Shown: positions 30,009 to 51,794, numbered from the stretch's first letter. The stretch: DNA of 64,000 nucleotides from Selaginella moellendorffii (GCF_000143415.4 NW_003314269.1:3031060-3095059), one strand, 5' to 3'. Notes: generated by a model from the letters alone, not told the origin. Made by a program: numbers and translations.

Positions 30009-30095
30009 CTGGCGATCGGAAAAGGTGGCGGACTGGTATAAAAGAGCCCCAAAGAGGTGAAAGGACAAACCCTATCACACCGATTATAGTGGGCG

Positions 30096-30482
30096 ATGTC
30101 TGAAATCTGTTGCTTGTTGGGTGGCGCGTGGTTTGCGGGTTGGAGCTGCTGGTTGTGCTTCAAAGATGGAGATTGCAGCTTTGGTGACGCGGAGTATGGC
30201 ACTGGAGCTTCCACCAGGGATGGCGAGGCCGAGAAGGAATTTGAGAATGGCATGGATTCGGTGGTACTTCCCCTGGAGCTCTACAGCGTGAGGGAGCGAG
30301 GGAGAGAGGAGTGCCCGATTTGCCTTGGGGCGTTTGGCGACGGGCAAGAGGTGACTGTGTTGCCCAAGTGCAAGCACTTCTACCATCGCGACTGTCTCTC
30401 GTCGTGGCTCTTCAGGCAACCCACTTGCCCGCTTTGCCGCTGTAGCGTCCGACACGGGCCAACCGAACTTAAAAGGCTCTAG
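30096..30482 (+). CDS. RING-H2 (ATL-like) E3 ubiquitin ligase, copy 1
   Basis: 128 aa; [43 protein letters not shown]; hydrophobic Cys-rich N-terminus; TATAAAAG at about 30037. Confidence 0.9.
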   Translation: MSEICCLLGGAWFAGWSCWLCFKDGDCSFGDAEYGTGASTRDGEAEKEFENGMDSVVLPLELYSVRERGREECPICLGAFGDGQEVTVLPKCKHFYHRDCLSSWLFRQPTCPLCRCSVRHGPTELKRL

Positions 30483-30485
30483 AAT

Positions 30486-46707: not shown

Positions 46708-49700
46708 ATGATCATCGGTAAGGCGCGAAAGCTTTGCTGCTCTTGGATTTTCTAGGTTTCCTCTGATCAAAATATCGATGTTTCGCTGCAGCGGAGAGCT
46801 TTCTCCACCGATTCGACGACGAAATCCGCTTTGGGAGCTGCGTTGGAACGATCGCCATCGCCGCGATCTTCATTCTCTCCTGGCTTGTGAGTTTCTTCTT
46901 GTCTACAAAGTCCCGGCCGACTAGCAAGCTCACGACCGCATTCCCGTTCAAGATTTTCTTCTTTTGCTGCTTTTATCTGCTGGTTTTGAGCGCTGCCAGT
47001 GCTTGCTTCGCATTTCTTCATCAATCACGGAGCGTGCTGTGTCTTGCGGAGGAATTGGTGCTAGCTGCTGCTTGGCTTGTTGCATCGCTAGCATTGGTAG
47101 CATCGCGCAAGAGAGGAGAAGAAAAAATCCCAGCGGCATTGAGGGTGTGGTGGATTGCCTCGTTCTGTGCTGGCCTTCCTGAGTTCGTGCTGTGTGTGGA
47201 TGATCTTCTTGCGTCCAAGTTTAAGCACAAGTCCTCGAATGCATATTCAAGCTTGGCTTGGATTCCTGCTAGCTTGGTTCTGCTAGTTGCATCGGTGAGG
47301 GGAAGAACAGGGATCAAAGTTATGAGCGGCAGTCTCGGTGAGCCTCTTTTAGAAGAAGAGGACACGCAGGTAGCGGACAAGGGCGAAGACAACGTTACTC
47401 CATACACCAGAGCTGGGAATCTAAGCCTGCTATTCATATCATGGGTCAACCCTGTACTGGCTCTCGGGGGGAAGAGGACTTTGGAGCCTGAGGATTTGCC
47501 GCAGGTAGCACAAGAACACCGAGCATCCACAGCCTATGAGTTTTTCCAGGACAAATGGGAAAGATCAAAGCAGGATTCCGAAAAATCGTCCAGCAGGCCA
47601 CCATCTGTGACAAGGACTCTAGTGGCATGTTATTGGAAGGAGGCAGTGGCGGTTGGATTCCTGGTGGTAGTGAATTCGCTCGCGTCATACGTGGGACCAT
47701 ACTTGATCGACGACTTCGTGAGCTACTTGAGCGGGGTTTACCGGTTTCCTCACGAAGGCTTGATCCTGGTGACGGTGTTCCTCGTCACTAAGTTTCTGGA
47801 GAACTTCTCTCAAAGGCATTGGTTTCTCAAGATCCAGTTCTTGGCGATAAAGGCCCGCGCGACGCTCACAAGTTGCGTCTACAGGAAAGGCTTGCGGCTT
47901 TCTAACTTGTCGCGGCAGAAATACACCAGCGGAGAGATTGTCAACCATATGGCAGTGGATATCCAGAGGGTTCTTGACTTCTCGTGGTATCTGCACGATA
48001 TCTGGATTTTACCGCTTCAGGTGGCGCTGGCACTTCTTATTCTATACCAGAAAGTCGGGGTTGCTGCGATTGCTACCTTGGTTGCGACGCTGGCTTCGGT
48101 GGCTGTCAACACTCCGTTTAGCTCATTGCAAGACAAGTACCAGGACAAGATCATGGAGGCCAAGGACGCCCGAATGCGAGCAACGTCGGAGTGCTTAAAG
48201 AGCATGAGGATTCTCAAGGCGCAAGCTTGGGAGAAGGCTTACCTGCAGAAACTGGAAGCCTTGAGAGGTGTGGAGTATGGCTGGCTGAAGAAATCGTTCT
48301 TGACGCAGGCAGCTATAATTTTCCTCTTCTGGACAAGTCCCATGATCATTGGAGTGGTCACCTTTGGTACTTGTGTGGTGCTGAAGATACCTCTGACCAC
48401 TGGGAAAGTTCTTTCAACGCTGGCCACCTTTAGAGTTTTACAGGAGGCGCTCATAACTCTACCCGACTGTATTTCAGCTCTGTCTCAAACAAGAGTTTCG
48501 CTGGATCGGCTGAGTAAGTTTCTTCACGAGCCAGAGCTTCAGGCGGATGCTGTTTCTCGGACAAATGACCAAGATCCTACAGTAATTCTGGTGGAAGCAG
48601 CAGATTTCAGCTGGGATGAATCTCCTGAGAAGCTCTCGTTGTCTAGAGTTAATCTGGAGGTCAAAACAGGGATGACAGTTGCGGTTTGCGGAAAGGTTGG
48701 TTCCGGGAAATCGAGCTTGCTCTCGTGCCTTCTGGGAGAAATCCCAAGGCTTTCTGGCAAGGTGCGCATTCTGTCGTTCTCTGGTTCTTGCCTTACATCT
48801 GCTTGTACAGGTGCAAGTAACTGGAAGAACATCGTACGTGGGTCAAACTGCCTGGATACAAAGTGGAAAGATCGAGGACAATGTCCTTTTTGGCTCTCTT
48901 ATGGACAGAAGTAAATACGATCGCGTGTTGGAGATGTGTCAACTCAAAAGAGATCTGGAAGTTCTTCCATTCGGAGATCAGACAGAAATAGGCGAGAGGG
49001 GCATCAACTTGAGCGGCGGCCAGAAGCAAAGGATACAACTTGCTCGTGCATTGTATCAGGATGCTGATATCTACCTACTTGACGATCCTTTCAGTGCCGT
49101 GGACGTGGAAACTGGTACTCAAATATTCAAGGTAAGCGCATGTCTCTGTTTGGCCCTGTGATCTCACTCATAAATCTTATGCAGGAATGTGTTCTTAACG
49201 CACTGGCATCAAAGACTGTCATTCTAGTGACGCATCAAGTGGAGTTCTTACCTGTGGCTGACCTCATTTTGGTAAGAAACTTTTTTCATAAGTTCTAAAG
49301 ACCACTACGTTGACGAGCTAATTTGATTCAGGTTCTAAACGATGGTCGTATAACGCAGTCAGGAACATACACTCAGCTTTTACAAGCAAAAACTGACTTC
49401 AGTGTGCTTGTTGGAGCACACAACAAGGCTATGGAAGTCATGAATCAGGCTGACAAGACCTTAGATAGCGTAGACAATACCGTGGAAGGTATCCTGGATA
49501 ATGAAGAAAAGAAAGAAGTGCAGAAGTCGGACGAGCATGAAGCGCAGGCAAAGGCCGGAAAGGCAGAACAACTGGTACAGGAAGAAGAACGCGAGAAAGG
49601 CAGTGTTGGTTTGCAAGTTTACTGGAACTACTGCACGGCGGTGTACAAGGGCGGCTTGATTCCATGCATATTGGCGACACAGCTGTTATTTCTACTCTTT

Positions 49701-51794
49701 CAAATCGCGTCAAACTGGTGGATGGCTCGCGAAACTCCAGCGACGGCTGTAGCTCCAGAGTTTGATCCTGCTCGGTTGATCATCGGGTATGGAGGATTTT
49801 CGTTTGGAGCATCGCTGTTCGTGCTTCTCAGGGTGCTGCTTCTCAATGTCATCGGCCTCGCGACGGCTCAGAAGTTCTTCTTTGACATGCTACATTGCAT
49901 TTTTCATTCGCCAATGTCGTTTTTTGATTCTACTCCAACTGGTAGAATTCTCAGCCGGGTACGTATTGTAACTTAAAGTTTGAAGTTTTTCATCCAGCTT
50001 ATGCTTTTCCTTCTCAGGCCTCTACAGACCAAAGTGCTCTTGACTTAAATGTGCCTTACAGGCTTGGGGGCGTAGCGTTCTCAGGCCTACAGCTCTTAGG
50101 CATTGTTGGAGTTATGTCTCAAGCAGTTTCGCAAGTCTTAATTGTTTTTGCTCCTGTGTTTGTTTTCTGTATCTTGCTACAGGTAAATCCCTTTCAATCA
50201 ATACTTTATGTCCTGATGAGAGTTGAATTTAATTTTGCAGAGATATTACATCTCGTCCGGCAGGGAGCTTTCCAGGCTTCAAGGAATCCAGAAGGCCCCG
50301 ATCATTCACCACTTTGCGGAATCTATTGCAGGAGCTCCAACAGTAAGAGGCTTTGGCCAGGAAGAGCGTTTCATGCACAGGAATATGTTTCTCATCGACA
50401 CATCTGCTCGAGCCCATTTCTACTCGGCTGCAACTATGGAGTGGGTCTCTCTGAGGCTAGAACTCCTCACCAACGTTGTCTTTGGATTCTGTTTGCTTCT
50501 GCTAGTTTTTCTCCCTCCCGGCACCATTCCCCCAAGTAAGTTTTCTTTTCTTTTCTTTTCTTTATTTTTCCATTGCAACAAGAGCTGACTTTGTTTCTTT
50601 TTCGTGTTTTTCTTCCCCTCATCAATAGGTTTGGCTGGTTTAGCTGTGACATATGGATTGAATCTGAACGGGTACCAGTCGCTTTTTGTTTGGAACTTGT
50701 GCAACGTGGAGCGGATGATAGTTTCTGTTGAACGTATACAGCAGTACTCTCGCATTCCCAGCGAGGCCCCATGGGAGATTGAAGAGTCTAAGCCTCCGGA
50801 AAGCTGGCCTGCTACAGGAAACGTTGAGCTGGTGGACCTCAAGGTAGGAAATTCCTTCTAAAATTATGTTACAACTTAACAAAGACTCTGTGACACAGGT
50901 CCGCTATAACTCTAACTCACCGCTGGTGTTGAATGGCATTAGCTGTGTATTTCCGGGAGGCAAGAGGATTGGAGTTGTGGGCCGGACTGGCAGTGGAAAA
51001 TCCACGCTCATCCAGGCCATATTCCGCCTGGTGGAGCCATCCGGTGGAAAGATTGTGATCGACAGCGTGGACATCACGAAGATCGGGTTGCATGACCTCC
51101 GATCCAAGCTCAGCATCATTCCACAGGATCCAACGCTGTTCGAAGGCACCATCCGCTATAATCTCGACCCCCTGGGACAGTTTTCGGATCCAGAAATCTG
51201 GGAGGTAAGTTTCCTAAAACTAGTTATTCTTGTATGTATTAAGAGCAGCGCTTCCACAGGCCTTGGATAAATGCCAACTCGGAGACTTCGTGCGCTGCAA
51301 GGAAGAAAAGCTGGACTCACTGGGTAAGCAATGAATGTGAAGAAGTTTTCTTCCCTTTCTTATCACGTTGTGTGTGTGTAGTGTCTGAGAATGGTGAGAA
51401 CTGGAGCGTGGGACAGAGGCAGTTGTTTTGTCTTGGACGGGTGATGCTAAAACAAGCCCGTGTTTTGGTACTCGACGAGGCCACCGCATCCGTGGACAGT
51501 GCTACTGATGGAGTGATCCAATCCACCATTGCCACGAAGTTCCAGGGATGCACTGTTATCACCATTGCCCACAGGCTGCCTACTGTGGTGGGCAGCGACT
51601 ACGTTCTAGTCCTAAAGGATGGTATTGATATTTCTCTCCTTTCTTTTTGTTTCTCTCTGGCACATTAATACCAATCTTTCTTGGCAGGACGCATAGCTGA
51701 ATACGACGAGCCGGGTAAGCTTTTGGAGAGCAGCTCGCATTTCTTCAAGCTTGTGGCCGAGTATTCCAAGAGATCTTTCGGATCGTCAGCTTAA
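46708..51794 (+). CDS. ABC transporter C family (MRP), full TMD0-TMD1-NBD1-TMD2-NBD2; closest by motifs to the AtABCC5/MRP5 clade
   Basis: 10-nt first coding exon ATGATCATCG (46708-46717), intron 46718-46791. Walker A GKVGSGKS and GRTGSGKS, signature LSGGQKQR, Walker B IYLLDD and [21 protein letters not shown]. Final exon ends SKRSFGSSA* (stop 51792-51794). No frameshift seen in the exons read. Confidence 0.95.

Follow-up and report, generated by a model that had tools for sequence, protein, structure and literature searches.

Four RING-H2 Genes Joined to Inverted Copies of a Neighboring ABCC Transporter Gene in Selaginella moellendorffii: Structure, Probable History and Antisense Potential

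Results

We analyzed a stretch of 64,000 nt from Selaginella moellendorffii (GCF_000143415.4 NW_003314269.1:3031060-3095059; hereafter the window, whose positions are counted from its first nucleotide), in which four RING-H2 genes are each followed, shortly after the stop codon, by an inverted pseudogene copy of an ABCC transporter gene that lies intact at the end of the same locus. An earlier note made from the sequence had proposed that this arrangement could couple the transcription of the RING genes to the silencing of the transporter.

The four RING-H2 genes claimed in that note are all present on the + strand, as RING1 (30096-30482), RING2 (34241-34627), RING3 (38129-38515) and RING4 (40429-40815), each being an intact open reading frame (ORF) of 128 aa that matches Pfam zf-RING_2 at an E of about 1e-15 (54-58 bits, against a cut-off of 27.3); the copies are 91-97% identical to one another, and RING1 is identical to the database protein P0001. 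The zinc ligands occur in C3H2C3 order with canonical spacing (C73, C76, C92, H94, H97, C100, C111, C114) and are invariant in 4/4 copies, as is an ATL-type context in which P90 precedes the third Cys, W104 follows the sixth ligand and CP-x-CR forms the ending (C111-R115). The hydrophobic first 22 residues include many Cys and Trp, and no GLD motif could be read from the alignment in any of the four copies. Lacking the combination of an N-terminal transmembrane helix with the GLD motif, RING1-4 are best filed as ATL-like RING-H2 proteins and predicted E3 ligases, not as canonical ATLs. Both RefSeq and JGI carry gene models for the RING genes of the array, and the database clusters of S. moellendorffii include these proteins, exactly or nearly so, under XP_002960890.2 ("RING-H2 finger protein ATL5"), XP_024527914.1 ("ATL74-like") and EFJ38427-EFJ38429; the best matches outside Selaginella are ATL57-like proteins with 40-47% identity.

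Each RING ORF has its own TATA box, as had been claimed: the motif TATAAAA lies 58-59 nt before the ATG in 4/4 units, at 30037-30043 (59 nt) for RING1, 34183-34189 (58 nt) for RING2, 38070-38076 (59 nt) for RING3 and 40370-40376 (59 nt) for RING4; and, in the alignment and motif scan, the TATA box together with the 5' leader is nearly invariant across all four units. RING3 shares only 73 nt of upstream sequence, TATA box included, with the other units. Counted as events, insertions and deletions numbered 0 in the RING ORFs; the flanks, whose substitution divergence is comparable or higher, had 8-13 for every 384 nt.

Paralogs elsewhere in the genome (P0013-P0016) have homology to the array RINGs that is confined to residues ~29-118: the N-terminal 28 and the C-terminal 10 aa differ, the paralogs stopping 10 aa earlier, and the upstream coding region of the paralogs persists in the array only as a frame-broken similarity at 29605-29998. 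A paralogous RING locus is recorded under XP_002969435.2. These features indicate that the array RINGs were remodeled at both ends, and we regard them as probably functional, weakly constrained young genes. In the 10-aa tail (30450-30482 and equivalents), the first additional codon is CGA, which is one change away from TGA, and the tail may therefore have arisen when a stop codon was lost.

The transporter gene occupies 46708-51794 on the + strand. Exon-by-exon Pfam and PDB searches, combined with an intron model, gave 12 exons encoding 1468 aa, with the ATG at 46708, the stop at 51792-51794, an uninterrupted ORF and only GT-AG introns of 49-93 nt; a start near 44.4 kb, as given earlier, is thereby corrected. 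The ABC_membrane, ABC_tran, ABC_membrane and ABC_tran pieces are in the right order on that strand. The joined 12-exon model was then used in local tblastn and in the k-mer and duplex counts, the database searches having been run exon by exon. The MRP5-like identity suggested for the transporter holds, in that exon 2 matched the solved "ABC transporter C family member 13" with an E of 1e-166, the next ABCC giving 2e-61, a difference of about 100 orders of magnitude. AtMRP5 and ZmMRP4, which are phytate transporters, have their cereal counterpart in ABCC13 (PMC5301939). Transport of phytate (InsP6, inositol hexakisphosphate) at the vacuole would be a putative function of the Selaginella ABCC. 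About 150 nt past the ABCC stop begins an AT-rich stretch (51950-54000) with a GC content of 0.28 and a CpG observed/expected ratio of 0.26, which resembles an inserted, methylated transposon or repeat.

Inverted ABCC pseudogene sequence on the - strand, which we call arms, follows each RING gene for 3.06, 3.43, 1.34 and 3.8 kb in units 1 to 4, respectively, with BLAST E-values far beyond chance, the earlier note having given 1.3-3.6 kb. Arm 1 (30483-33542) runs from ABCC 51780 back to ~47800 and ends in a terminal piece of 37 nt that matches ABCC 46888-46924 perfectly; therefore, the original copy must have taken in nearly the whole coding region, reaching from the stop codon back almost to the beginning of exon 2. 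Arm 2 occupies 34628-38044, arm 3 (38516-39852) has an internal deletion and arm 4 (40816-44608) reaches ABCC ~47452. When compared by local tblastn and by a five-way MAFFT alignment, all four arms had kept introns, so that they are DNA copies and not retrocopies, and all had in common the loss of intron 6 along with adjoining parts of exons. The identity of the arms to the gene falls from 88-91% in most exons to 70-88% in introns. Stops, frameshifts inside single exons and numerous private deletions, such as the absence of 120-170 nt from exon 8, mark the arms; arm 1 has two frameshifts in its exon-2 equivalent and large exon deletions.

A fifth inverted ABCC pseudogene, which the earlier note did not mention, lies on the - strand at 45325-46408, where it faces the intact gene head-to-head at a distance of ~300 nt from the ATG. 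This older copy, of ~1 kb and heavily deleted, is 65-76% identical to the gene and lacks the arm-specific deletions, for which reason we assign it to a separate, older lineage; it suggests an earlier inverted duplication of the whole gene. No RING remnant was found before it (44.4-45.4 kb) or downstream of ABCC, so that an ancestral convergent RING/ABCC pair beside the intact gene is unsupported.

The switch from RING to the reverse complement of the last ABCC exon had been placed within about 10-35 nt of the RING stop, and the units bear this out in 4/4 cases: the junction motif begins 13 nt (RING1 and RING3) or 32 nt (RING2 and RING4) past the stop and, apart from a 15-nt gap, corresponds exactly to the reverse complement of stretches within ABCC 51738-51776; in RING2 and RING4 the homology also takes in what is left of the ABCC stop codon, ~10 nt from the RING stop. 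We found no homology between the ABCC 3' flank and the RING region; therefore, the junction is the breakpoint of a rearrangement in which both genes were cut off from their own 3' untranslated regions (UTRs). The AT-rich stretch beyond the gene, if an insertion, may explain why that flank has no counterpart in the arms. Because ABCC-derived sequence starts 10-30 nt past the RING stop, any RING 3' UTR must be antisense to ABCC, and the complementarity to the 3' end of the ABCC mRNA that the earlier note expected of every RING 3' UTR is thus forced by the position of the junction. Within that ABCC-derived sequence, a candidate polyadenylation signal, ATTAAA, lies on the + strand 49 nt past the RING1 stop (30531-30536), with equivalents in units 2-4 at 34695-34700, 38564-38569 and 40883-40888, at +49 or +68 from the stop. 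This hexamer is present in 4/4 arms and absent from the matching antisense strand of the intact ABCC, and, conserved as it is, could end most RING transcripts early, before any perfect antisense 21-mer.

The first 100 nt past the RING stops gave predicted duplexes with the tail of the ABCC mRNA of -77 to -127 kcal/mol, versus -41 to -50 for shuffled sequences (z of -9 to -17). Perfect antisense 21-mers to ABCC number 351, 407, 33 and 338 in arms 1 to 4, the first of them lying 438, 164, 868 and 164 nt past the respective RING stop, and the longest perfectly complementary run between the arms and ABCC is of 117 nt (32773-32889 in arm 1 versus ABCC 48488-48604). In CpG observed/expected ratio the arms (0.70-0.74) equal the homologous part of ABCC (0.71), the transposon-like stretch past the gene having the low value given above, and polarized CpG transitions in the arms occur at only 1.3-2.5 times the non-CpG rate; by these two measures, neither the arms nor the homologous part of ABCC bears a footprint of long-term methylation. 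Nor was a local fold-back found, there being no inverted repeat of at least 30 nt within 600 nt anywhere in 29000-46800.

The RefSeq protein XP_024527914.1 could be reproduced exactly from the window only as 38129-38448 joined to 39153-39225 across a GC-AG intron of 704 nt (38449-39152). Its second coding exon, on the + strand, is joined to RING3 codon 107 and runs antisense to the copy of ABCC exon 8 that arm 3 contains, so that the model reaches 710 nt into arm 3. The resulting isoform is without the last two zinc ligands and gains 24 codons, which are read in antisense from the dead ABCC exon 8. Since a GC-AG intron is non-canonical, transcript support for this model is suggested.

Four units can be delimited by self-BLAST and repeat families, all oriented on the + strand: unit 1 (29336-33542), with a 760-nt upstream region, RING1 and arm 1; unit 2 (33543-38055), with an upstream region, RING2 and arm 2; the short unit 3 (38056-39852), with the 73 nt of shared upstream sequence, RING3 and arm 3; and unit 4 (39853-44608), with an upstream region, RING4 and arm 4. 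The three junctions between units (33542/33543, 38044/38056 and 39852/39853) all differ. Calculated over shared alignment columns, K is 0.15-0.19 between the gene and the arms, 0.10-0.14 between units 1 and 2, 0.057 between units 1 and 3 and 0.03 between units 2 and 4, which values place the arms in one clade; therefore, a single inverted duplication was followed by amplification. With four arms on the - strand and the gene on the + strand of the same locus, the array does constitute a multi-arm inverted repeat with the intact ABCC, as had been stated. RING3 resembles RING2 in its 5' part and RING1 in its 3' part, and RING4 the reverse, which hybrid structures point to crossing-over or gene conversion within the ORFs; that process would also be the reason why the RING ORFs are 95.6-98.7% identical, compared with 79-92% for the flanks of units 1 and 2. 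Array-type RING genes, at least three in number, are also carried by a second scaffold (6.95 Mb); this scaffold and the one of 3.67 Mb that contains the window are taken by us to be two haplotypes of the published assembly.

The array begins ~1.4 kb past the second of two pentatricopeptide-repeat genes (22657-24975 on the + strand and 25606-27951 on the - strand), which are preceded by a WRC-domain gene (18740-21417, - strand). Beyond ABCC, two copies of ~2 kb (55369-57522 and 61559-63368), 6.2 kb apart and with 84-95% identity, are full of degenerate tandem repeats with periods of 12, 23 and 35 nt that give rise to long chance ORFs. The ORFs at 28723-29784, 39146-39760 and 44433-45248, having no Pfam match, were likewise taken as chance ORFs. 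The window contains no runs of N, and Rfam and tRNA scans of it gave no matches.

Discussion

The explanation that we favor, and to which we give somewhat better than even chances, is that one composite unit has been repeated here in a young tandem array, where recombination is still going on; in it the RING genes would be selected and the ABCC arms would be passengers. According to this proposal, a segment of the ABCC5/MRP5-type gene that began at about codon 60 and ended with the stop codon would have been copied in inverted orientation as genomic DNA, and a copy of an ATL-like RING-H2 gene, whose paralogs are found elsewhere in the genome, would have become joined to it tail-to-tail, which junction would have deprived both partners of their own 3' UTRs. 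The resulting unit of 4.1-4.5 kb would then have been amplified to four copies through at least three further rearrangements, with crossing-over or gene conversion taking place also within the RING ORFs. The ATTAAA that arose in the arm lineage would probably serve as the RING polyadenylation signal, with some transcripts reading further. Because the junction lies so close to the stop, every RING transcript would end within ABCC-antisense sequence, and antisense ABCC RNA would for that reason be an automatic by-product of RING expression. An adaptive role of the arms in the regulation of the transporter is in our judgment unlikely, and less likely than the passive hitch-hiking of a pseudogene with an amplified RING gene. 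Of the coupling proposed in the earlier note, therefore, the antisense 3' UTR and the inverted repeat stand, whereas for regulation itself some indirect evidence—the ATTAAA, the CpG content, the decay of the arms and the lack of a fold-back—leans against.

Several observations weigh against the explanation that we favor. The dN/dS ratio among the four RING ORFs is 0.4-1.4, near 1, as calculated on only 5-17 differences, and does not demonstrate constraint at the protein level; P0008, a copy on the second scaffold, has lost 5 aa, the last zinc ligand among them. The RefSeq model of RING3 suggests that transcripts really extend into an arm. Furthermore, arms 1, 2 and 4 keep 93-97% identity with ABCC 48060-48580, versus ~85% elsewhere, and this zone of 0.5 kb within exon 2, which is probably the result of gene conversion between the inverted copies, could instead reflect the upkeep of complementarity. 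Finally, repeated amplification that always includes the antisense arm would also be expected of an antisense source selected for its dosage.

In a working antisense silencer, the RING promoters would drive arm transcripts that pair with the ABCC mRNA as trans natural antisense, or read-through from unit 4 into the gene would produce a fold-back; dicing, masking of the 3' end or nuclear retention would then lower the ABCC mRNA, so that induction of RING would reduce phytate-type transport and the number of copies would act as dose. We consider such a silencer unlikely. The forced antisense 3' UTR, the strong duplexes predicted for its first 100 nt, the 338-407 perfect antisense 21-mers in each of arms 1, 2 and 4 and a RefSeq RING3 spliced into the arm by a GC-AG intron, which an ab initio predictor rarely chooses, are all consistent with it, and precedents exist in the PAI1-PAI4 repeat (PMC3203196) and in the antisense small interfering RNAs (siRNAs) derived from rice pseudogenes (PMC2708354). 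Yet the first perfect 21-mers, at 164-868 nt past the stop, lie beyond the conserved ATTAAA, the arms gather deletions freely, in their proximal part as well, and so decay like neutral DNA, and the CpG measures reveal no footprint of methylation. S. moellendorffii is also reported to lack the machinery for trans-acting siRNAs. Small-RNA libraries of the species have no obvious 24-nt peak (PMC5569507), which also speaks against silencing. A further version, in which the RING-arm unit is a selected antisense cassette of adjustable dose—a stress-type RING promoter whose copy number tunes down an MRP5-type transporter through long antisense RNA or siRNAs of 21-22 nt—strikes us as improbable. Literature searches on this locus, on Selaginella ABCC5 and on Selaginella antisense transcripts found nothing specific.

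The opposite view, that the whole array is silent debris whose young, unexpressed RING duplicates are merely still free of disabling mutations, we likewise rate as improbable. The dN/dS ratio near 1, the allele on the second scaffold without a zinc ligand, the RefSeq RING3 isoform without the last two ligands and the reduction of the RING3 upstream region to 73 nt are what this view would lead one to expect; but the absence of indels from four ORFs whose flanks accumulated 8-13 events over an equal length, the invariance of the TATA box, leader and zinc ligands, and the gene models of RefSeq and JGI argue against it. As to the mode of amplification, which is compatible with the other explanations, the unit could have spread as a mobile or extrachromosomal circular cassette, with permuted copies re-inserted instead of arising by unequal crossing-over. 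We see little chance of this: the differences among the three unit junctions would fit, as would a piece derived from unit 1 that lies between units 2 and 4, but all copies are in one head-to-tail array at a single locus, where neither terminal repeats nor target duplications nor a transposase came to light. An assembly artefact, through haplotypes collapsed or falsely duplicated, is suggested by the presumed presence of two haplotypes in the published assembly, with which the 3.67-Mb and 6.95-Mb scaffolds are consistent, and we regard it as extremely improbable, for the copies differ by 3-14% with many private indels and distinct junctions, the window is free of runs of N, and the second scaffold has array-type RING genes of its own. 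Since the arms differ by 10-15% from the gene and by 3-14% from each other, sequencing reads can be placed uniquely among them.

If the arms are passengers, as we favor, the locus would illustrate cleanly how chimeric gene ends are made by segmental duplication, the RING gene having gained its stop region, 3' UTR and probable polyadenylation signal from a dead transporter copy read in antisense, and how such units are amplified and recombined in a compact lycophyte genome. If, alternatively, the antisense acts, the locus would be a natural gene-plus-antisense bicistron that links an E3-ligase promoter to phytate-type transport, with one transcript shared by a protein-coding gene and a trans-acting antisense regulator, in a lineage whose small-RNA pathways are unlike those of seed plants.

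Comparison with Known Systems

As for the two gene families involved, the array RINGs have in common with the ATL family the C3H2C3 ligands and the ATL-type context, as reflected in the names given by RefSeq, and differ from it in lacking GLD, in their length of only 128 aa and in being lineage-specific copies. The intact Selaginella transporter has the full TMD0-TMD1-NBD1-TMD2-NBD2 order of AtABCC5/MRP5, ZmMRP4 and cereal ABCC13, which are inositol-hexakisphosphate transporters and which it resembles in sequence.

With respect to the arrangement as a whole, the closest working parallel is the PAI1-PAI4 locus of Arabidopsis Ws, a tail-to-tail inverted gene duplication behind an unrelated promoter, most of whose transcripts stop early, a minority giving rise to double-stranded RNA against related genes; the ensuing silencing of unlinked paralogs, by methylation of DNA and of histone H3 lysine 9, was demonstrated genetically (PMC3203196). 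The Selaginella locus likewise has an inverted duplication behind a candidate heterologous promoter; in contrast to the PAI arms, however, which abut and lie on one transcript, its arms are pseudogene fragments situated 2.8 kb or more from their target and have been amplified four times, each behind a coding RING, and the CpG proxy argues against long-term methylation. In rice, pseudogene-derived antisense small RNAs against parent genes were defined by mapped small RNAs, in a study that also cites cases from mouse oocytes (Guo et al., PMC2708354). The two cases have in common a duplicated pseudogene whose antisense transcript, a predicted one in Selaginella, can pair with the mRNA of the intact gene from which it derives; that study left the source of the antisense promoter open, whereas in Selaginella the neighboring gene would supply it, and amplification in step with a coding gene is not seen in the rice cases. 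The inverted-duplication model for the origin of new MIRNA genes takes as raw material an inverted duplication of the future target (PMC1790633, PMC3237417), and the array does contain such a duplication of a prospective target gene; the model, though, needs a local fold-back, and the array has none within 600 nt, nor any Rfam match. If active, the Selaginella locus would thus join the silencers based on pseudogene antisense and inverted repeats, where the coding RING before each arm and the four-fold amplification would be features of its own.

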